Both the position numbers and the translations under genes were made by a program. The notes below the pieces were generated by a model that saw only the letters and a list, made by a program, of their open reading frames with translations, ran no database searches and had not been told where the DNA came from. From positions 13,950,001 through 14,014,000 of the forward strand of contig CP075493.1 in the NCBI GenBank assembly GCA_021613535.1: a DNA stretch of 64,000 bases, in the 5' to 3' direction. Positions 7,162-26,270 of this stretch are shown here, one piece after another; the stretch's first letter is position 1, and every line of letters begins with the position of its first letter. The DNA is from Adineta vaga (lineage: Eukaryota > Animalia > Rotifera).

Positions 7162-8924
7162 TCAATTGAAGATAATATTGCATGTATCGCCATTCTCTTT
7201 CTGCTTCTGAACACCCTTAAAATCAAAGCCCATTATTTCCCATTGGCTACTATCAGGTGAAAATGTATTATACCACCATTGTGATTCAGGTAATAAACCA
7301 GGATGATTGTCTGTCACACGCACCATTAAACCTGTACAAACAATTGTAGAATTAGGATCATTAAAATCCATAACTGGTTTTCCTTTTGAATCAATAAGCC
7401 ATTCTATAACGTCATTGTTTATATTAGGATCAATAATAGCATCGTATGTTCCAAGTGTTTCTCGACCAATCGTTTTTATATTATCAGGATGTACACGACA
7501 TTGTAATATAAATTGAACATATTTTCCATCCTTAAAAAAGTTTTGCTCATTGATTGATTCAATCTTTTTAATTTCAGAATATCTTGGATGAGCTGTATAG
7601 ATAATTGATTGACTAGCATATATACCTTCGCCATGTGCTATTACTTTAGCTGGTTTTAATCCACTTAACAATATTGATAGACCATAAGCAAATTTTGTTC
7701 CATGGTAACATACAGACCATCCTTTAAATTTTTCATAAAAGTTATCAGTAATGTAGAAAGAAAATCTTTGCCATCCAATAGGACAAAAATATGGGTAGGA
7801 ACTTCGATCTCGACCGTCTTGAAGAGTACCATTCCAATAGTTATGAGTGCTATCATAGATATAATTCCATTCCGGATGTAAGGTGATTTGCGAACGAAAT
7901 TTTAGTGTTTCATCCAATGTTTCTATATCACCCATGTACATGAACAAAACTTTTAGCATACCTAACATTTTAAGCAGTTTATCTGTAAGTGAATGATAGA
8001 GAGCTTTGATCTGAATTACTTTCTCACTACCAGCAAATTTTTCGAAAATATTAAATGCGACTTTGACACAACCACTTTGTATTTTGCTGATAGTAATATC
8101 ATCGATGTTTAATATATTGCGAATGTTATTTAAGAATGATTCCGCATCAAAGTCATCGGCTTTTTGATCGATAACACATACCAATGAGGCTGTTGCTAAC
8201 TCAAAGCCGTCATAGAATATTTTATCCGAGACAGATACTAGTGGCATTTGTGTTATATCATAGTATTGTTGACATTTTTTGTAATATGCTTTTTCATCGA
8301 CCGGTAGTGGTTCTGTAGACCATATACTAGGTTCTTCTGGTGGTTTGTCATCTGAATCTTCCGCTTGTACATCTATAGCTATTAATGAAAAGTAGTGAAC
8401 TAGTTCAAATGATTTACTTTCAATCGAATATTTTCAAGCACGCTAAAAAATAACTCGCACAAACTTTTGACATACGTACTGAGAGAAATTGGTAGTGGTG
8501 ATGGCACTGATTCTGGCCTCGTTGATGGTACTGGTGATGGCACTAATTCTGGCCTCGTTGGTGGTACTGGTGATAGTACTGGTGATGTTGCTGGTGATGG
8601 TACTGATGTTGACGATGATCGAGAGAGTGACGATGATGGTAGGTCTGGAAGAGGTACTGGCGACGGTGTTGGGGGTAATGATGGAAGTGGCTTTCTAATT
8701 AGTTTAGCGTTAGAGTAATGTCTCATTATTTCATCACGTCGTGCCAGTGCCAACTTGTCGATCTGAATCTCAAGATCTTCCATACGATTTGCGCGTCTTT
8801 TTTCAGACGTTAAATCATCCCTTTGTTGATTGTACGTCACCGATAATAAAGATCCACGCGATTCTGTGATATCATCGCTGAGTCGGTAAATTTTTTTTAA
8901 TCGTTTTTCTGCTGCCCTATCCAT
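7162..8924 (-). CDS. PARP-like (NEURL4 C-terminal type) ADP-ribosyltransferase domain protein with Pro-rich linker, 2 exons
   Basis: Exon 1 8924-8480, phase-1 intron, exon 2 from about 8378. Motifs YFCPIGWQRF, WSVCYHGT (H), GEGIYAS (Y), QFILQCRV and VIEW (E) give the H-Y-E ART triad. Confidence 0.8.
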
Positions 8925-9747
8925 ATTTTTCTCTCTAAAAAAGAAGTTTGGATAAAATCTAATAACAATCTAAAAACATCGTTTTGCGATAAAATGCTCG
9001 AAAACACATGTCGTGCTTTGCGGTTATATCAAATACAAAATGATGTTCTCGTTCTCTATTTGCCTTTTATAATTAAGAATATCGAAGCAAAGCTTATCAG
9101 TTAAAAACATTATTTATCTCACGAAAGAGAACAATAAAGAAGTCGGTAATAAAGAAGAATTTCGCAGAAAGAATACGAAAAAATGACAAACTATCGGTTG
9201 ACTTGAATTGCTACTCTCATTTGCCTATCAATGGGTTCGAATCGGAGATAAGAATCTTGAATCTATGCTCACTATCTAGTTCAATCAAGGATATTGAAAT
9301 AATTTTTCCAACATCGCAGATGGAAAAATCCAATTTGGTTATAAAAGGAGAGAGAGAGGACGCATGAAACATGAAAATGGTTTTCCATCTGTTTTTTTTC
9401 CTCTTTTTTTATACAGAATATTTTCTCGGCGTCTTTCGTCTCCTTTTTTTCTGCAAGAAAAACTTCAACATAACATTAAAACTACGTTTATAATTAATGT
9501 GAAGTAAGGATGTCGACAAGAAAATGTAGAAGAACACTGAAGAAAAGAGGAAAACCATGGAGAATGAGAAGTCAGATATGACATAAAGATGAATAGAAAA
9601 ATGGAGAAATAGCTTCTTTCGAGATGAAGTAGTAAACAGTGCATAGGCATCAATAGTTAGGAAGAGATCAACTTATCGTGCTAGATGTATTGGTACCGGG
9701 GAGCGACTACATGATTATTCGTTATTTCCATATAAGATATTACTACC

Positions 9748-10345
9748 ATGACCAATCGGATAGTTCTACCTTGTACAACATTATTTCTAGTAATAGTAAA
9801 AACACTCAATGATAAACAAACGTTTTCAATGGAGAGAACATCGAATTCCATAATCATCTCAAACATTCGATTGAATTAGTTGTTTCAGCAAATACTGTTC
9901 CATTTCGACACCTAGCTACAATTCCTGCAACGTAAATCGAATATAAAAGACTAAATTATATCTAATATTTTTATATTTCACATAGAAAAGCGTTTTCCTC
10001 TCATTGCACACCAGGATTTTTCGGACATTTTAAACATACTATGACCGATAGAGCGGCGACATTATTCGAAATTTCAGTTGGAATATCTGATGGAAATACT
10101 TATTACGATTTAAGTGTTACTGATGGTTTCAATGTACCAATGAAAGTTTATGCACCAGACGGGTAATTCATTTTCAATTGAATATTCTTTTTTTTCTTAT
10201 ATATTATTAAGAGCTTATCTATTTTAGAACAAAAATTCAAGAATTACATTCGCGAGCTCCAGACGCTTTTCTTCATTCAGTAGACGATTCAAAACTACAT
10301 GTTCTGAAAGGAGACGGAAAATTCATCATTGTTTTTGAATCGTAA
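9748..10345 (+). CDS. Small thaumatin-like (PR-5) protein, nearly cysteine-free; 5' end uncertain
   Basis: Exons ~9837-9931, 9986-10162 and 10228-10345 splice in frame: ..ATLFEISVGISDGNTYYDLSVTDGFNVPMKV..APDAFLHSVDDSKLH..FIIVFES*. This matches thaumatin motifs ATLaEf / fYDvSlvDGFNvPm / PdAy...DD. The signal-like start at 9748 needs a frameshift or weak intron to join. Confidence 0.7.
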
Positions 10346-10667
10346 ACGAGTGATTTTTGTTTTATGTAATACTTAAAACTAAAAATCTAAGTGATAATTT
10401 CATTATTGATCAATCGAAAGCTAACAAAGCTGTCTACAAGAAGAAAAAAACATACTTAGATTAACCATCGTCATATTTTTATTACAAAACGATTTGATTA
10501 TAATAGTAATACTGTACAGTAAAATCAAAGGAAAAAGTTCACGTGATGATATCAAGATACTTTTTGCTTTCGATGGTTTTCCTCTGCATAGCTCATTCAT
10601 TTTTTTACAATCTCAGCTAAAATGTTTGATCAAATTTAAAAAAATATTTATTTACATAAGAAAGAAC

Positions 10668-20260: not shown

Positions 20261-22004
20261 TAAATTTCATTATTGCTCACTTGGATTATTTTATTGATTA
20301 TTTAAATATAAATCTAAAACTATGTATCCCTCAAGAATTAATTTTATGTCAAGATTTATTTTTGAGATCTCTATTTATATTCGAATTCGAATTAGACATC
20401 TACTCACTTTCATTTGTGTAAGTGTGAAAACATACATTCTTATACGTTCTATAAGAACTTCAAAATTGTCACAATAATAATATTGTTCTTCATTTTTCTG
20501 TATATTATTGCTTACATCGTCTTCTCGTGGCTTTATCGTCGTTTTTCTTAACTTCCATCTTTATATTTTTCCTTTTTTTCTCGAATTTCGTAAAACTGGT
20601 GCCACATCCGCTTATTAATTACGCTGAATAGAAAAAAACTCCGATGAATACAGATGGCTCCAACGACTGACTCTTTTCAGCGAGAAATATGTTTTTTGAA
20701 TATATACTATAGATATACGCAGTCGTTAACTTGTTATTGTATATTATTATCTCAAAAAAATATTTTTTTTCTCTTGAGTACTTTGCCATCGTCTCATAAA
20801 AAATTGCTAGCGAAGAAAAAGAGAAAAGAAAACTTACTTATCGGAACTGATGTTTTCCGCACTACATAGACTATATCCAGTGAAACGCACGATGAAAAAT
20901 ATTTCTGTTAATTAATAAGTAAGTCGCTTTTAACCAATGCAAATGTGCGTCGAATGCCATTTCCTATACTTTCAAATCTAGGAGCAATCGAGAGTTTTGT
21001 TTTGCATCTTGTACTCAAAATATTTTCACTATAGAATTTCTAAAAAATTATATTTGAAAATAAGTGAGAAATATAAAAGAAAATAAAAATATAGGCGAAG
21101 ACTAGTTTATTCTCATTGTTGTATTTTAAATTACATTTTTCGTTTGTGATCAAAGTCCATCGCATAATAGAATTGTTACCTTTTTATGAAATTTTATCTT
21201 TGTGTCCATCGTCAAGTTGTCGAAATTCAAGCTATTATGAAGAAAATTTAATTGATTTTTTTTTATTTAACAGGATTGTAACTCAAGATCTCCTGGAACG
21301 CCGTTTATAAACCGCCTGAAAATTCTAAATCTCTTGGAAGTTTTTAAATTCCTTACGCATTCAATCTCTGTTATAGCTAGCGTCACCAAACTTTCCATAG
21401 CAGTTCCCGAAGCTCAATGAAGGATCGAAAGGGACTTGGTGGTCTTGTGTGTATATCCGCGCTGGATAGAACTTGAACTGAAAGTCTAAGACTTTTCATG
21501 TCTGAACTAAAACGGAGACAGCTTTCGAGTGAGATGCGTAAGAAAAAGGATGAATTTTCCAGCAGGAACTGTAAGAAAACGGGTGGATTTGGAATGCTAC
21601 ATAGTATAAGTTGTTCTATCTTAGATATGCGTGGCGGGATATGTTGTGGTAATGAATGAAAAAATTTCAAGTTCAACCCTCTCTGCATCCCCTGTCACTT
21701 CTGACATATGTAGTTTTCAGTCGGAAAGATTCTGGATCAAGATCGGCTACTTCCGCTAGTGTATTTATAGAAAAGGAATTGAATATGGATGATTGCGCAA
21801 TCATTATGTCTCATTAAAAGTTTCTGTGCCATTTTTACTAGTACAGTAGTTAATGAGATCATAGTTTGAATGCAAAAGTGTTTTTTATGAAAGAAGTTGT
21901 ACCCTAATATTTTCTCACTAGATTGCTTTATTTCAGAAAGAAAGTTTTATATTTCGACGATATAAACTTCATTTAAACACTTTGTGGAATCTACTTCAAA
22001 AGTG

Positions 22005-25000
22005 ATGTCAACGTTTGAGCAGCTTACTGCTGGTACCAGCCCGACCGCAAAAACAGTGGAGAAGTTCTTCGAAGATATATGTTGCACATTTTCATCTATA
22101 CCGATTGAACTGTCTGAGCAAAAACCTACTCGGTCAGACCAAAAAGATCAAGATCAACTCGCTTCAACTTCGAAAAAGAGACAACTTTCGGCGACTACTG
22201 ATGGTCCCAGTCCTAAATTAAGAAAGAGATTGAATCTGATAGCTGTTGTACACTTATTACCAACTTTACCGGCATACTTGCGTGCTTTACACAAAATAGG
22301 TGATATAAAAGCCATTATATTCAAAGGTGTAGCAGAGAATGATCGACCCAAACATATGAAAGATATGGCTGAATGGGTAAAAAATCACGAAACTTTTGGC
22401 CCTGCTGTCAACGAAACAACGAAGGAAGACCTTAAACAAGAGGATAGTGTTACTGAACTCTTGTCAAATGCTGCTGATAGTAATGGAGAAATACTAATTA
22501 TGGATATAGGTGGTTATTTTGCTCATTGCTTACCAACTTTAGCTAAGTCCGTCGCAGCTGGATGTCCTTGGAAGCTATTAGGTATTGTTGAAGATACTGA
22601 AAATGGACATCAAAAGTATCACCAGGCTTTAGAAAAGTTTCGATCATTAAATAGTTCAGCTTTGCCACAACCGAAGATATATTCCGTAGCAAGAAGCCGC
22701 ATGAAGATGACTGAAGACTATAACGTTGGCAAGTCTCTTGTACGCGCAGCTGATACTATTCTTCGACAGTCACTGGATCATCGTTTAGAAGATCATCGTA
22801 CTATTGGTGTACTTGGTTTCGGTAAAATTGGTAGTAGTATTGCAATGCATTTACGACAGCAGCACATTGGCATAGTAATGGTCTACGACGTAAATCCAGA
22901 GATTTTACTTCGAGCACATTCATACGATTTCGTAATATGTTCTAAAGAACAAATGTTGGAACAAGCTTCGTTCATTTTCTGTGCTACAGGTAATAAGGCG
23001 CTTACTTACAATGATTTAATAAACATTGGTACAAATGTTAAACGTCTCATAATCGCTTCATGTACTTCCGCAGACGATGAGTTGGATATTCATAATGGCT
23101 TTGAACGTAATAATAATAAAAACCAAAGCACTGATCCTCGTAGCTTCTCTCGTTATACATTGACGCGTTTGAGTGGCGAGCCTATCGACATAGTTCTTCT
23201 GTGCAATGGTAATGCCGTTAACTTTTTTCACCGTGCTGTACTCGGAGAGTCGATCCGATCTGTACAAGCCGCTATGATAGTATGCGCACTTAAGTTGCAG
23301 CACTTGTCTTCCAATGCTGACTTAGCATCCGGAATTAATACTTTGACCAATGAAGATGAGATGCGAATTGCTCGCCTTTGGCTTCAACATTTTACACAAT
23401 TAGATGTGCATATAATAACAAATTTGGTCTGTGCTCATATGAAGTTTGATAAAATTAGTGTTGAAGAAGCTATAGGTGATTTACCTGTTGATGAAAGCTC
23501 TATCAAGCAGTTAAAAGAAAACATGGGTTTGACGAAAACAAACAACACAGATGCGATAGATTTCATGGATTCTACAAGAAAACTTATTGTCACAGCACCA
23601 CGTGGATCAGGCAAGACGGCAATACTGTTTTCTTTTATTCACGACGTTCGTAACTATTATGATATCATATGGTGGTTTGATTGTAATGATTCGTTTCAGA
23701 GCACACTACTTTCATTGGCACATGAATTTCACGTTTCTTCTATCGAGCGATCCGAAAATGACCTAGGAAGAGCTGTTCTAGAAGCACTTTTCTCATCTCT
23801 AGCAGTCAACAGTATTTTATTAATCATTGACAATGTTCAAAAAGATGATGAACAGAATGCTTTTGAAATGACTGCCAATATTGCAAGCAACACAAACGGT
23901 ACAACATATCCCAAACAACGTCCGTTTAGATGTCATGATTTTCTACGTATTATCAATGAAACTTTGGATGGTGAATCGCGCCGTCAACGGCGATGCCATA
24001 TTATAGCATTGTACACAGACCATAGCGCTAACCAACAACCATCAAAAGAAATTTCGCCACCAAAAATCCAAGAAGAAAAAGATGATTGGCTATACTTACC
24101 CCTGGAAATGATTGTGCATGAACAAACACCAGATAAGATTATTGGTTTGGTTCTTAAAAATCTTAGTCCAGACGTGGCAGAAAATCGAAAGCAACTTATC
24201 CGTAAAATTTTATCTATTGATTCACGTCGATTGACAATGCGATTGACTAATTTACTTTTGACGTCAACGAATATAGATGATACCGAATTAACGGAACTTA
24301 CAGATAAAATCGATAAACAAAAACTAGGTCAGAACGGAAATTATGATGTATTATCCCAGTTGATTAAATTAGCATTGGAACAGTTGAAAAAGGAGGATGA
24401 ACGCTTTTTTCTCTGTGCTGAAGTCGCCAGTTTGATACATACTTCAAGTATAAGTCGAGAAGTATTTCGTCACATCTATCGCATTTTGTGTCCTTACGAA
24501 AATACCTCACCAGATTGGGATTCATTTTGGCAACAACTCCTTTCAAAGTACAAGAAATATTGCTTATTAAAACAAAATTTTCTAGTACCGACGATTCATA
24601 GACGTGTAAGTGAGCGTCATATTCCTTCTGAATATGTGGAAGTCTACAGTATACCAAGTACGTACGCCAAAGCATTATGCGAATCAATACTCAGAGATAA
24701 TACATCTCGCATCTGGGAATATGCTTTCGAACTCATTAATAACCGTTTCAGTTATGATTACTATGGCTTCAAAGATGATAAAAACTTGCATTATGACGAA
24801 CAGGGCATTTTTCACTACCTTGATCATGCAATTGCTTTAATCAAACGTAGTGAAAAATACATCGATAATGAGCATTATGCCCAATCATGTGGTGAACTAT
24901 TATGTCGCTTAGGATCGTACTATCTAAATGAGCGTCGGATGTATTCTGAAGCAGCGCAGTCGTATTTCAAAGCAAACACTATATTTGATAGTATGATGAA

Positions 25001-25739
25001 ATCTCCGAATGTCGATGGTGACGAAGAGAAACGTTCATTATTGTTCGTTTTAAAATGTAGTACAACACAGATGTGGAAAATTTGTGAGCATCTTACTGGT
25101 AAGCCCGATAAAACAAGAGATGAAGATTTTATTTCAAAAATTGAAGAAACTCGATTGGATCTGGGAAAAATATCAGTAAACGCGGCTCTTTCAGGGAAAT
25201 ACGACCCAAAAAGATATCAAGTCGAAGCAACTATTGCCGTTGCACGTATCAACGTGCAAATCGCTCGAAACTCAGATGTATCTGAAGATGATCGGAACAG
25301 ATTGTTAACACAAGCCAAAAAAGAACTCGAAAATATCCAAAATGAAGATTACATTGGGACTCGTACACGTTCATTATTATTTCAAGTTCTTGGTACTACA
25401 TACAGTCTTTTGAAACGTTATAAACAAGCAATCGATACCTACCACAAAGTCTTAAAAATGCGTGAAGAAATATTAAGTTTTGACCATTTGGACGTGGCAC
25501 GTGCAAAATATCGGCTTGCTTTATGCCTTGTAGATTATATTACAAATTCGAAGGATGAAACGTGCAGTCCCGCTGAATATGACGAGAAATTAAATGAAGC
25601 GAAGTGTTTGTGCGAGAAGGCATTCACAGTACAACAGGCACGACTACCCGCGAAGCACAGTAACTTGGAAGACTGCAGTACTTTACGCAAACGCATTGCA
25701 GAACTGTTTGAAAAACTCAAGGATAAACAAAATGAATGA
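22005..25739 (+). CDS. NLR/STAND-like protein: AHCY (S-adenosylhomocysteine hydrolase)-like N-terminal domain + P-loop NTPase + TPR; intronless
   Basis: AHCY-like motifs AVVHLL, IMDIGGY (~22503), GIVEDTENG (~22590), KMTED, Rossmann GVLGFGKIG (~22815), VYDVNP, IFCATGN and LLCNGNAVNF. Walker A TAPRGSGKT (~23595), YDIIWWFDC, Walker B LLIIDNV (~23820). TPR-like LGSYYL..YSEAAQSY and LGTTYSLLKRYKQAIDTYHKVLKMREEIL..DHLDVA. Confidence 0.85.
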   Translation: MSTFEQLTAGTSPTAKTVEKFFEDICCTFSSIPIELSEQKPTRSDQKDQDQLASTSKKRQLSATTDGPSPKLRKRLNLIAVVHLLPTLPAYLRALHKIGDIKAIIFKGVAENDRPKHMKDMAEWVKNHETFGPAVNETTKEDLKQEDSVTELLSNAADSNGEILIMDIGGYFAHCLPTLAKSVAAGCPWKLLGIVEDTENGHQKYHQALEKFRSLNSSALPQPKIYSVARSRMKMTEDYNVGKSLVRAADTILRQSLDHRLEDHRTIGVLGFGKIGSSIAMHLRQQHIGIVMVYDVNPEILLRAHSYDFVICSKEQMLEQASFIFCATGNKALTYNDLINIGTNVKRLIIASCTSADDELDIHNGFERNNNKNQSTDPRSFSRYTLTRLSGEPIDIVLLCNGNAVNFFHRAVLGESIRSVQAAMIVCALKLQHLSSNADLASGINTLTNEDEMRIARLWLQHFTQLDVHIITNLVCAHMKFDKISVEEAIGDLPVDESSIKQLKENMGLTKTNNTDAIDFMDSTRKLIVTAPRGSGKTAILFSFIHDVRNYYDIIWWFDCNDSFQSTLLSLAHEFHVSSIERSENDLGRAVLEALFSSLAVNSILLIIDNVQKDDEQNAFEMTANIASNTNGTTYPKQRPFRCHDFLRIINETLDGESRRQRRCHIIALYTDHSANQQPSKEISPPKIQEEKDDWLYLPLEMIVHEQTPDKIIGLVLKNLSPDVAENRKQLIRKILSIDSRRLTMRLTNLLLTSTNIDDTELTELTDKIDKQKLGQNGNYDVLSQLIKLALEQLKKEDERFFLCAEVASLIHTSSISREVFRHIYRILCPYENTSPDWDSFWQQLLSKYKKYCLLKQNFLVPTIHRRVSERHIPSEYVEVYSIPSTYAKALCESILRDNTSRIWEYAFELINNRFSYDYYGFKDDKNLHYDEQGIFHYLDHAIALIKRSEKYIDNEHYAQSCGELLCRLGSYYLNERRMYSEAAQSYFKANTIFDSMMKSPNVDGDEEKRSLLFVLKCSTTQMWKICEHLTGKPDKTRDEDFISKIEETRLDLGKISVNAALSGKYDPKRYQVEATIAVARINVQIARNSDVSEDDRNRLLTQAKKELENIQNEDYIGTRTRSLLFQVLGTTYSLLKRYKQAIDTYHKVLKMREEILSFDHLDVARAKYRLALCLVDYITNSKDETCSPAEYDEKLNEAKCLCEKAFTVQQARLPAKHSNLEDCSTLRKRIAELFEKLKDKQNE

Positions 25740-26270
25740 CTCAGTTGAAAAAAAAGTATAAAATTATTATAAGCAAAGTCTATATTAATCATATACCTCT
25801 AACAACTAAATGATGAATCACCTTCTTCTTTCCTTCTTCCTCTTATTTACTTAGATAGTTGTCATCACGACAAATTTAACATTATCCAAGCATTTTCCTT
25901 ATTGTCTTTCTTCTATTATATCACATGTTACCGATGTAACTTCTTCTCTCTTATATGACACTTCGATCTCTCTCGTTTCATGATCAAGTGTTGACCCTGC
26001 TTTCTTATTTAGACTTTGTCCGAATGATCTTATATATCCAACCTCAGACTTAGTGATAAATACGTTATTTCTATATTATATGTGAGTGTTGTTATTTTTC
26101 TGATAGCGTGATACTGTGTATTCTGAGTACTATGTAAAGGACGAAGAAAATACAGTATAGTTGCGATTTCTTTGGAAAAAATAAAGATATACACATATAT
26201 CAGCTCTCGTATTCTTATACTTTGGGTGACAAATCGTCACAATATCGATTTCATTCTTGATGGTATGATT

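Follow-up and report, generated by a model that had tools for sequence, protein, structure and literature searches.

We found in a 64,000-nucleotide stretch of the Adineta vaga genome (the window; contig CP075493.1, positions 13,950,001 to 14,014,000) a gene that joins a domain of the S-adenosylhomocysteine hydrolase (AHCY) fold to a STAND-type NTPase. Our preferred reading, which we hold with about even confidence, is that it encodes a functional, horizontally acquired bacterial-type NB-ARC-TPR STAND protein whose output domain is a divergent NAD-dependent AHCY-fold enzyme.

The gene is a single intact reading frame under purifying selection

The open reading frame extends from 21984 to 25739 on the forward strand, with its first ATG at 22005. 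From there the reading-frame list and translation give 1,244 codons and a stop (22005 to 25739), with zero internal stops and no intron required, as a previous reading of the sequence alone (the sequence-only reading) had proposed. The protein can be aligned end to end with Adineta orthologues and bacterial homologues. A stored gene call for the rotifer genome (P0169) opens at M507 (23523, MGLTKT), inside the low-confidence linker between the enzyme and NTPase domains (23415 to 23561; pLDDT below 50 for amino acids 467 to 495). The three-part layout of AHCY-like domain, NTPase, and TPRs that had been claimed is real, as judged by profile matches, AF2 models, and fold comparisons.

The sequence-only reading had raised the concern of an assembly chimera. 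We found none, because one 4,563-nt contig from an independent 2013 DNA run covers positions 21602 to 26164 with 0 differences. The rotifer genome carries one copy of the gene. Compared with two Adineta orthologues, dN/dS is 0.27 to 0.28 over the whole gene, 0.12 to 0.14 in the enzyme domain, and 0.3 to 0.5 in the ARC/TPR region. The gene is thus under purifying selection, most strongly in the enzyme domain. Candidate transcript pieces were only 165 to 236 nt long, at a depth of about 3, and came from runs whose RNA status is guessed. A study of fungal infection in bdelloids does not mention the gene, and neither do the 200 supplementary files searched out of its 206.

The N-terminal domain has a complete AHCY fold

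We found that amino acids 1 to 470 form a complete two-lobe AHCY fold. An AF2 model of amino acids 1 to 520 (pLDDT 81) retrieved AHCYs as 50 of its 50 top Foldseek matches (E of about 1e-17), and VIA-align superposed it on solved AHCYs with a Z score of 32 over 372 to 390 residues (about 380) in both lobes. In this model, N-terminal helices (amino acids 2 to 29) and a disordered linker (amino acids 36 to 72) occupy 22005 to 22226. The helices superpose on the N terminus of solved AHCYs, the aligned model range starting at residue 1 or 2, and F21 within them is invariant in 22 homologues. The AHCY-like core (amino acids 75 to 470; 22227 to 23414), defined by profiles, Foldseek, structure, and family alignment, contains the NAD-binding Rossmann lobe (amino acids 265 to 407; 22797 to 23225). 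As in AHCY, this lobe has a GxGxxG motif (amino acids 271 to 276) and an acidic residue, D295, closing beta-2.

Of the two Pfam families expected from the sequence-only reading, AdoHcyase_NAD (PF00670) matched amino acids 265 to 407 at 29.1 bits (cut-off, 27), but AdoHcyase (PF05221) was not detected by a Pfam search of the gene. An NCBIfam adenosylhomocysteinase model matched amino acids 145 to 463 (1e-11). When a profile of the N-domain family was searched against the PDB, the matches down to 7.5e-24 were all AHCYs, and other families first appeared at about 2e-4.

The N-terminal domain is not a housekeeping AHCY

The window protein is just 14 to 20% identical to AHCY in this domain, and it scores 35.4 bits against the adenosylhomocysteinase (EC 3.13.2.1) model TIGR00936 (cut-off, 497.6) and 44.3 bits against NF004005 (cut-off, 275). 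True AHCYs of Streptomyces score 634 to 640 bits, compared with 82 bits for the AHCY-like paralogues that those genomes also encode. In a tree, the N-domain family formed a single clade distant from canonical AHCY, and ordinary, intron-bearing AHCY genes lie elsewhere in the rotifer genome. We concluded that the domain belongs to a separate, old paralogue family.

We mapped the catalytic residues by aligning 106 family members against canonical AHCY, with motifs from tool-derived canonical sequences. AHCY positions below follow human numbering, with a full catalytic set that we take to be H55, D131, E156, K186, D190, N191, H301, and H353. Near-universal across the 106 members are H55, D130, K186, D190, the GxGxxG motif, E243 (D or E), T276/G277, E305, and N346. 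Six changes are fixed: D131 to I, D134 to Y, N181 to A, D182 to R, G300-H301 to T-S, and L347 to F. The window protein follows this pattern. It retains H83, D167, E196/D197/T198, K234, D238, GFGKIG (271 to 276), D295, T328/G329, E359, and N406, and so has equivalents of H55, D130, E155/E156, T157, K186, D190, E305, and N346, whereas it carries I168, Y171, A229/R230, T354/S355, and F407 as substitutions. In the catalytic set, H55, K186, and D190 are retained, E156 is D197, and H301 is S355. D130 and D131 align with D167 and I168, where a one-residue register shift is possible. H353, unconserved in the family, is E415. The cofactor site and the K234/D238/H83 set are fully retained. In AHCY, these His, Lys, and Asp residues serve in oxidation of the ribose 3'-OH and abstraction of the 4' proton.

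The family also differs from AHCY at its C-terminal end. The tail of canonical AHCY extends into the NAD site of the neighboring subunit in the tetramer. The family profile alignment stops at the last core helix without this tail, stand-alone members terminate within a few residues of that helix, and in the window protein the disordered linker follows where the tail would be.

Because D131, N181/D182, and H301 are invariantly replaced and the tail is absent, SAH hydrolysis by the N-domain is unlikely; among the invariant losses are residues linked to the SAH-specific, hydrolytic half-reaction. The output suggested by the sequence-only reading, SAH production or hydrolysis, is therefore not the one we favor. 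Its argument that activation would follow from the oligomer dependence of AHCY is likewise weakened, because the family, stand-alone members included, lacks the tail that reaches the neighbor's NAD site. The mapped residues are as well retained in 47 fused bacterial rows as in 34 stand-alone rows, and the fused domain therefore looks like a working enzyme.

The C-terminal half is an NB-ARC-type STAND NTPase with a TPR solenoid

Amino acids ~520 to 924 make up a P-loop NTPase of the STAND class and NB-ARC type, and amino acids 925 to 1244 make up a TPR solenoid. The nucleotide-binding domain (23562 to 24104) contains the motifs that had been named from the sequence: Walker A APRGSGKT (amino acids 531 to 538; 23595 to 23618), YDIIWW, and LLIIDNV (amino acids 605 to 611), of which LLIIDN (605 to 610; 23817 to 23834) is the Walker B motif. 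The Walker A G/K and Walker B D residues are retained in at least 90% of 24 homologues. A helical and winged-helix (ARC-like) region follows (24105 to 24776), delimited by the plant-NLR profile match, model secondary structure, and alignment.

The NB-ARC assignment holds for the family and for 14 of the 24 homologues (Pfam NB-ARC at E ≤ 0.01), and the protein's own model matches STAND structures, but the window protein searched alone falls short. Alone, it has no Pfam NB-ARC hit, stays under every curated STAND cut-off, and matches AAA_22 at only 23 to 26 bits, below cut-off. Five bacterial homologues among those checked singly pass the NB-ARC cut-off. The NTPase family profile matched the NB-ARC of the plant NLR Roq1 at 7.7e-15 over 313 positions; MLA13, Sr35, ZAR1, NRCs, AfsR, and CED-4 were also matched, and NCBIfam FxSxx_TPR gave a local match (6.7e-13). 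With a model of amino acids 490 to 1244 (pLDDT 79.7), Foldseek ranked the STAND-TPR structure 6mfv first and also returned SAMD9, Apaf-1, Avs3, CED-4, and plant resistosomes. Together, the profile match to plant NLRs and the fold match to 6mfv support the NB-ARC-TPR STAND type.

The claimed C-terminal TPRs (24777 to 25736) stand as a fold: the model shows a helical-pair solenoid of 13 helices at amino acids 925 to 1243, although the Pfam hits (TPR_12, TPR_10, and TPR_NPHP3, amino acids 1104 to 1175) are sub-threshold.

The protein shares with the NB-ARC-TPR STANDs of bacteria and fungi, such as the TPR proteins of FxSxx-COOH systems, its P-loop, hhhhDN Walker B motif, and C-terminal TPR solenoid. 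With Apaf-1, CED-4, and plant NLRs and resistosomes, it shares the fold and a plant NLR NB-ARC profile match over about 300 residues. Unlike these proteins, it has as its N-domain an AHCY-fold enzyme rather than TIR, CARD, CC, PNP_UDP, HeLo, or patatin, and the rotifer clade lacks the GLPL-like and MHD-like motifs. Bacterial homologues retain the G.P (GLPL-like) motif, and several retain an hHxxh motif. In the bdelloid clade and in P0009, the aligned GLPL-like and MHD-like positions instead read DSRRLT and (I/M)PS(T/S); in the window gene, DSRRLT (24219 to 24236) replaces G.P, and Pro replaces the MHD-like His in YSIPSTY (24645 to 24665). With these motifs lost, the switch of the rotifer clade may work differently or be degenerate.

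The gene was most likely acquired from bacteria

A search for the same architecture found it in other bdelloids (Adineta steineri, A. ricciae, and Rotaria) and in many bacteria, including true bacterial contigs of Coxiellaceae, Gammaproteobacteria MAGs, and a 1.59-Mb contig with Legionella_OMP. At least five bdelloid assemblies contain intact orthologues, which have eukaryotic genes on their flanks and partly conserved synteny. In the tree, every C-extended form fell inside one 79-row clade (SH-aLRT 99), and the bdelloids formed one clade (98) within a 23-row clade (97) shared with Coxiellaceae and Gammaproteobacteria rows. Since the rotifer copies group in a single clade that lies within those of bacteria, the gene was most likely acquired horizontally from them. 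We rejected an animal invention because the gene belongs to a bacterial family that shares its architecture.

Proposed mechanism and competing explanations

Among stand-alone family members, a NUDIX hydrolase gene adjoins or is fused in 7 of 7 loci checked, and pairings with sugar/nucleoside kinases also occur. These pairings point to nucleotide-type compounds as candidate substrates. According to our preferred reading of a STAND protein with an AHCY-fold output, a trigger would bind the TPR region, and the NTPase would then exchange nucleotide and oligomerize, as in other STAND/NLR proteins. Oligomerization would gather the N-domains and release or activate the enzyme, a step proposed only by analogy because the family lacks the AHCY C-terminal tail. 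The substrate might be a ribosyl compound, whether nucleoside, nucleotide, or nucleotide-linked sugar, which the activated enzyme would oxidize transiently at the 3' position, with elimination or isomerization a more likely reaction than SAH hydrolysis. In a conflict or immune setting, the outcome could be a depleted metabolite or a newly made modified nucleoside.

There is a precedent for such chemistry. AgmF, from angustmycin biosynthesis, is an SAHH-like nucleoside dehydratase with tightly bound NAD that does not turn over SAH; the bound NAD+ transiently oxidizes the nucleoside sugar, and elimination follows (PMC8599513). It is 34% identical to canonical SAHH and requires H299 (the H301 equivalent) and D129 (PMC8599513). 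As an AHCY homologue with non-SAH chemistry, AgmF resembles the domain proposed here. It differs, judged from its published description, in that the present family aligns Ser with H301 and Ile with D131. AgmF is also a stand-alone biosynthetic enzyme, and the window domain is fused to a STAND NTPase.

A more specific proposal, possible but on the unlikely side, is that the AHCY-like domain represents a new STAND/NLR effector class. Once activated, its bound NAD+ would oxidize the 3'-OH of a common nucleotide or nucleoside, and the 5' substituent would be eliminated. The widespread bacterial NUDIX and AHCY-like pair would carry out this nucleotide-modifying conflict chemistry in free-standing form, and bdelloids would have taken the receptor-coupled version into animal innate immunity. 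If this is true, the output would be an essential pool drained or a 4',5'-didehydro nucleoside poisoning replication.

An immune protein activated by oligomerization fits the architecture, from which pathogen sensing would follow by analogy alone. The one-gene design of effector, NTPase, and repeat sensor is that of the bacterial Avs families and bNACHT, and Avs3 is among the fold matches. In contrast to those systems, the window protein matched no PADLOC model (0 PADLOC-DB families at E ≤ 0.1), and around seven bacterial homologues no defense island and, save for one HicAB pair, no defense system was recognizable. The bacterial homologues are single genes amid housekeeping genes or adjoin Fic, HicAB, transposase, LRR, or Sel1 genes. 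The PADLOC result and the mostly housekeeping neighborhoods would suit a non-immune regulated enzyme, a less likely reading in which the STAND-TPR part is a metabolic or signaling switch of the MalT or AfsR type and an endogenous ligand tunes a nucleoside-modifying activity. AfsR is among the NTPase profile matches, stand-alone relatives lie in a conserved, metabolic-looking Streptomyces operon with sugar-nucleotide enzymes, and the single rotifer copy is unlike the usual expansion of immune receptor families. However, NB-ARC-TPR proteins with enzymatic N termini are typically conflict proteins, the fused forms are patchy and close to transposases and toxin-antitoxin genes, and sequence change is faster in the C-terminal half than in the enzyme domain.

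The same neighborhoods bear on a rather improbable explanation, that the bacterial homologues are secreted, host-targeted effectors with which intracellular bacteria alter host nucleoside metabolism and the rotifer gene is a domesticated copy. Nearly all identified bacterial carriers of C-extended forms (full STAND fusions and shorter ones) live in association with hosts or as predators: Coxiellaceae, Francisellaceae, Rickettsiaceae, Mycoavidus, Bdellovibrionota, and the 1.59-Mb genome with Legionella_OMP. Neighbors include eukaryote-like repeat proteins (LRR and Sel1), a Fic protein, and a TrbI/VirB10 gene, and long, polar tails without order terminate some of the homologues. Repeat-protein neighbors are nevertheless commonplace in such genomes, and a 1,200-amino-acid nucleotide switch with a repeat sensor is untypical as an effector design.

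It is very unlikely that the AHCY-like domain serves as a ligand sensor or a pseudoenzyme (compare AHCYL1/IRBIT) with the TPR region as the interaction or output surface. Several canonical active-site residues are altered, animals are known to have AHCY-like proteins that lack catalytic activity, and a solved AHCYL structure, 3gvp, is among the Foldseek matches. Yet other invariant residues take the place of the altered ones across 106 sequences drawn from several phyla, the NAD site and K234/D238/H83 are fully retained, stand-alone members sit in enzyme operons, and this domain has the lowest dN/dS of the gene.

Bacterial contamination, an assembly chimera, or a decaying pseudogene, which an intronless, bacterial-type gene with a G+C content of 0.38 against 0.31 in its flanks might suggest, is refuted to the point of near impossibility by its position 14 Mb into an 18-Mb chromosome-scale contig, the independent DNA contig spanning it at a depth equal to that of its surroundings, the intact bdelloid orthologues with eukaryotic flanks and partial synteny, and a dN/dS of 0.27.

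Significance

STAND/NLR proteins are the shared chassis on which animals, plants, fungi, and bacteria build intracellular immunity, and with every output domain added to the list another way of killing or starving an invader has come to light. In the searched literature, we found no published description of an AHCY-like domain joined to an NLR-type switch, in agreement with the sequence-only reading, and an AHCY-type effector is absent from the main text of a 2026 survey of prokaryotic STAND proteins (PMC13581612). An AHCY-fold NAD enzyme as a STAND output is thus undescribed in searchable papers, and it points to ribose chemistry on a nucleoside or nucleotide unlike that of the NADase, nucleosidase, and deaminase effectors already known. 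The analysis defines a sizeable uncharacterized enzyme family, for which a single-protein search gave 172 cluster representatives with E ≤ 1e-30; with E ≤ 1e-10 the number was 568. Its stand-alone members, being tied to NUDIX hydrolases, open a workable way to the substrate in bacteria. For rotifer biology, the gene adds a candidate to the foreign genes that an asexual animal has maintained under selection, in this case possibly for defense.

A single open reading frame joins an AHCY-like domain to a STAND module

We found that the gene at 22005-25739 on the forward strand of the window is uninterrupted. Frame +1 has no stop from 21984 to 25739, and the first ATG, at 22005, opens 1244 codons (ORF list and translation). 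The G+C content is 0.38 in the ORF versus 0.31 in its flanks. An independent DNA run from 2013 gave a single contig across 21602-26164 with 0 differences and with depth matching the local level. This bears out the intronless ORF described in the sequence-only reading and removes its concern about an assembly chimera. In two Adineta assemblies the orthologues are intact and have eukaryotic genes on their flanks. Against these two orthologues, whole-gene dN/dS was 0.27-0.28 (Nei-Gojobori). By domain, the values were 0.12-0.14 (AHCY-like), 0.25-0.29 (NTPase), 0.40-0.50 (ARC), and 0.32-0.43 (TPR); all are rough, as dS is >1. The independent DNA contig, the intact orthologues flanked by eukaryotic genes, and dN/dS together rule out contamination or a chimera, and we regard an artefact as a negligible explanation.

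Synteny with Adineta steineri is partly kept, because window 4771-5401 matches an unannotated gene about 4 kb upstream of the A. steineri orthologue (L101:1359-2209), with 35-41% identity at the protein level. Here, about 17 kb separates the two genes.

No run recorded as RNA contained the stretch. Runs whose RNA type was a guess gave only pieces of 165-236 nt at a depth of about 3; these fell in each half of the ORF and immediately downstream of it. The gene call stored for this genome (P0169, 738 aa) begins at internal Met507, corresponding to 23523-25739; it covers the NTPase-TPR part only and omits the AHCY-like half. By annotation, the A. steineri, A. ricciae, and Rotaria orthologues are full length or nearly so (1119-1248 aa) and contain the enzyme domain. 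Because the frame is unbroken, selection spans the linker, and the single-gene form occurs in bacteria and other bdelloids, we argue for one predicted protein that contains both the enzyme and the NTPase-TPR part. We found no paralogues in the same 100.8-Mb, six-contig genome except for weak TPR similarity.

The N-terminal domain has the AHCY fold and belongs to a separate family

The N-terminal domain had been described as a complete two-lobe module like that of S-adenosylhomocysteine (SAH) hydrolase (AHCY), and our analysis agreed. Pfam AdoHcyase_NAD matched aa 265-407 with 29.1 bits, barely over the cut-off of 27. A profile of 22 homologues run against the PDB retrieved AHCYs alone down to 7.5e-24; other Rossmann proteins began at about 2e-4. 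AlphaFold was used to model aa 1-520 (pLDDT 81; disordered at 36-72 and 467-495), and in Foldseek the best 50 matches to this model were all AHCYs (E about 1e-17, about 400 columns). VIA-align superposed 372-390 residues on AHCYs at 3.1-5.2 A with a Z score of 32. This alignment starts at residue 1-2 of the model and extends to about 480. Taken together, the matches show that both lobes, and the N-terminal helices as well, are AHCY-like. A non-AHCY dehydrogenase as the better match is ruled out, since other Rossmann families reach E values of only about 1e-4 to 1e-5 and match the NAD lobe alone.

The domain is not the housekeeping enzyme. NCBIfam adenosylhomocysteinase models matched aa 145-463 at E 1e-11, yet scored only 35-44 bits against cut-offs of 275-498. 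The same genome (G000) has ordinary, intron-split canonical AHCY/AHCY-like genes at five other loci (C1:4931792-4933411, on the contig that carries the window; C2:9923270-9925304; C3:18563443-18565430; C4:8184882-8186563; and C5:8756009-8757830), and these five bear the standard CLHMT, DDGGD, SEETTTG, TKSKFDN, and GHFD motifs. Streptomyces and Actinocorallia genomes likewise have both types, with TIGR00936 scores of 634-640 bits for canonical AHCY and 77-82 bits for the AHCY-like family member. With three canonical AHCYs as the root of the tree, the 106 rows of the family formed their own long branch. An HMMER search with a single protein against 1.84 billion representatives returned 880 proteins at E <=1e-3, 568 at <=1e-10, and 172 at <=1e-30. 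We concluded that the N-terminal domain belongs to a paralogue family separate from housekeeping AHCY.

Redox residues are kept and the substrate pocket appears to be rebuilt

We aligned the 106 family rows with canonical sequences and mapped the active site, with canonical motifs read from tool-derived sequences and with what we take to be the human AHCY residue numbers. Kept across the family are H55 (H83 here), K186 (K234), D190 (D238), the GxGxxG motif (aa 271-276), T276/G277 (T328/G329), E305 (E359), and N346 (N406); E243 (D295) is kept as D or E. D130 (D167) is also kept, and its neighbor D131 is replaced by I168, an assignment that could be shifted by one residue as it comes from a sequence alignment without coordinates. 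Like I168, the other replacements are essentially invariant: D134 to Y171, N181 to A229, D182 to R230, G300-H301 to T354-S355, and L347 to F407. The position of H353 (E415) varies in the family. E155/E156/T157 were matched to E196/D197/T198 by eye, backed by invariant columns of the homologue alignment. The profile alignment and the stand-alone members show that the family has no C-terminal tail, the element with which canonical AHCY caps the NAD of the neighboring subunit (PMC8599513).

These residues suggest that the predicted machinery for NAD-dependent 3'-oxidation and proton abstraction is intact. That the domain is a sensor or a pseudoenzyme we consider improbable. The residues for the homocysteine side and for the water-addition step appear to have been rebuilt, with a new invariant arginine in the pocket. 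Since these are replaced, SAH hydrolysis is unlikely to be the activity of the domain, and the SAH production suggested as one possible output in the sequence-only reading is likewise unlikely. An AHCY homologue with other chemistry is known: AgmF is an NAD-bound nucleoside dehydratase with no SAH activity (PMC8599513).

Stand-alone family members are linked to NUDIX hydrolases

Stand-alone members (about 370-430 aa) were linked to a NUDIX hydrolase in all seven loci opened, at least five of which come from different bacterial phyla. NUDIX is the next gene in Streptomyces (L026:7752-9604), Bdellovibrionales (L058:7914-9627), Nomurabacteria (L064:208-1898), Spartobacteria (L043:1040-2723), and, with a weak match (E 0.0017), an uncultured bacterium (L010:7779-11988). 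The two are fused in Mucilaginibacter (L022:2320-4023) and Flavobacteria (L027:936-2642). The pair appears to be a two-component module that modifies nucleotides and has yet to be characterised, and we found no description of it in the full-text literature searched.

In the Streptomyces operon (L026:4613-11846), the genes for the AHCY-like enzyme and the NUDIX hydrolase are accompanied by those for an APH-type kinase, a histidine phosphatase, a CTP_transf_3 cytidylyltransferase, a 637-aa protein containing an SDR epimerase/dehydratase domain, and a 481-aa protein that belongs to no family. The AHCY-like gene occurs in dozens of Streptomyces species, and this operon content was read in L026. 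L010 carries two AHCY-like genes in tandem (7779-10444), the second of which is highly divergent, with an end branch of 3.65 in the tree. A PfkB kinase and the weak NUDIX match lie after them. The NUDIX linkage, the Streptomyces operon partners, and the PfkB kinase favor a nucleotide or nucleotide-linked sugar over SAH as the probable substrate.

In a shorter architecture, with a total length of about 650-720 aa, the AHCY-like domain is followed by about 230 C-terminal aa for which, on L011, Pfam gave no match. This form was seen at L009:3828-6378, L011:7791-10338, and L012:2005-4574. Its carriers are Gammaproteobacteria, Francisellaceae, Bdellovibrionota, and Rickettsiaceae. A small Sel1-repeat protein lies downstream in 3 of 3 loci opened (weakly matched in L011, E 0.0014).

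The central region is a STAND NTPase of the NB-ARC kind

The claim of a STAND NTPase followed by TPRs stood at the level of the family and the fold; taken alone, the window protein falls below the Pfam cut-offs for these parts. Its NTPase part reaches at most 23-26 bits with AAA_22, whose cut-off is 27, and it has a local FxSxx_TPR match (6.7e-13). Pfam NB-ARC was found at E <=0.01 in 14 of the 24 aligned homologues, and five bacterial homologues checked singly exceed its cut-off. The family profile matched plant NLR NB-ARC domains over about 300 residues (Roq1 at 7.7e-15, MLA13, Sr35, ZAR1, NRCs, and ADR1), as well as AfsR and CED-4; at the family level, the central region fits STAND profiles. 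RecA as the best profile match was discounted as an artefact, because these rows are RecA chains fused six-fold that align over the P-loop stretch only.

The model of aa 490-1244 (pLDDT 79.7) matched the folds of the STAND-TPR protein 6mfv, SAMD9, Apaf-1, Avs3, CED-4, plant resistosomes, and NOD2/NLRP. The protein retains the Walker A motif (APRGSGKT) and an hhhhDN-type Walker B. The rotifer clade has DSRRLT in place of the bacterial G.P (GLPL-like) motif and Pro in place of the MHD-like histidine. From aa 925 onward the model is a solenoid of helical pairs, with sub-threshold TPR matches.

The fusion is shared by bdelloids and bacteria

Adineta and Rotaria supply the nearest homologues. The same architecture is present in A. 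steineri, A. ricciae, Rotaria socialis, and further bdelloid assemblies, with 56-69% identity in the N-terminal part. It also occurs in bacteria: Coxiellaceae, several gammaproteobacterial MAGs, and a 1.59-Mb contig that carries Legionella_OMP. Francisellaceae, Rickettsiaceae, and Bdellovibrionota have C-extended forms that are shorter. In the tree, which comes from a quick search with SH-aLRT support only and includes many metagenomic proteins without a known source, a single clade (99) takes in every C-extended form. Bdelloids form one clade (98) whose sister is P0009 (100), and both are nested within a 23-row clade (97) that holds Coxiellaceae and Gammaproteobacteria rows. The deeper bacterial diversity consists of stand-alone, NUDIX-linked forms.

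P0009 (1584 aa), the nearest relative of the bdelloid proteins, has the same insertions and motif losses as the rotifer proteins; its own nearest relative is another protein, P0011. Its contig (L096:1-17376, JGI metagenome 3300026433) is gene-dense and has RPN2, cathepsin L-like, protein kinase, and DDE transposase genes. Because of the RPN2, cathepsin, and protein kinase genes, we assign the contig to a second eukaryotic carrier. The eukaryotic genes seemingly have no introns, and RPN2 is only 41-63% identical to rotifer RPN2 over matched segments. The most economical reading of the tree is that eukaryotes received the gene from bacteria before Adineta and Rotaria split. As the known bacterial carriers are mostly host-associated, some of the tree may instead reflect transfer in the opposite direction.

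A proposed STAND switch on a nucleotide-modifying enzyme

We found no description of an AHCY-type domain on a STAND protein in the full-text literature searched, nor in the main text of the 2026 survey of prokaryotic STANDs (PMC13581612). A search of 200 of the 206 supplement files of the bdelloid-fungus infection study gave no match for the gene. Within that literature, the earlier statement that no AHCY-effector NLR is known to have been described in animals is correct. Bdelloid proteins are already auto-named [quoted passage not shown] in databases.

A PADLOC scan of the whole protein returned no family, and we saw no defence-island context around the bacterial homologues. For these reasons, and because the gene is single copy in the genome, an immune role would be by analogy with known NLRs. 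A regulated enzyme with a non-immune role is the strongest alternative, and we consider it unlikely. Somewhat less likely again is that the gene descends from an effector with which intracellular bacteria target their hosts, a reading suggested by the nature of the bacterial carriers and by the LRR, Sel1, Fic, and TrbI neighbors. We give about an even chance to the preferred reading, a STAND switch on an NAD enzyme, probably in a conflict setting. According to this model, the STAND module would control an NAD enzyme that acts on a nucleoside or nucleotide. We concluded that the gene encodes an NLR-like STAND protein whose enzymatic head is new.
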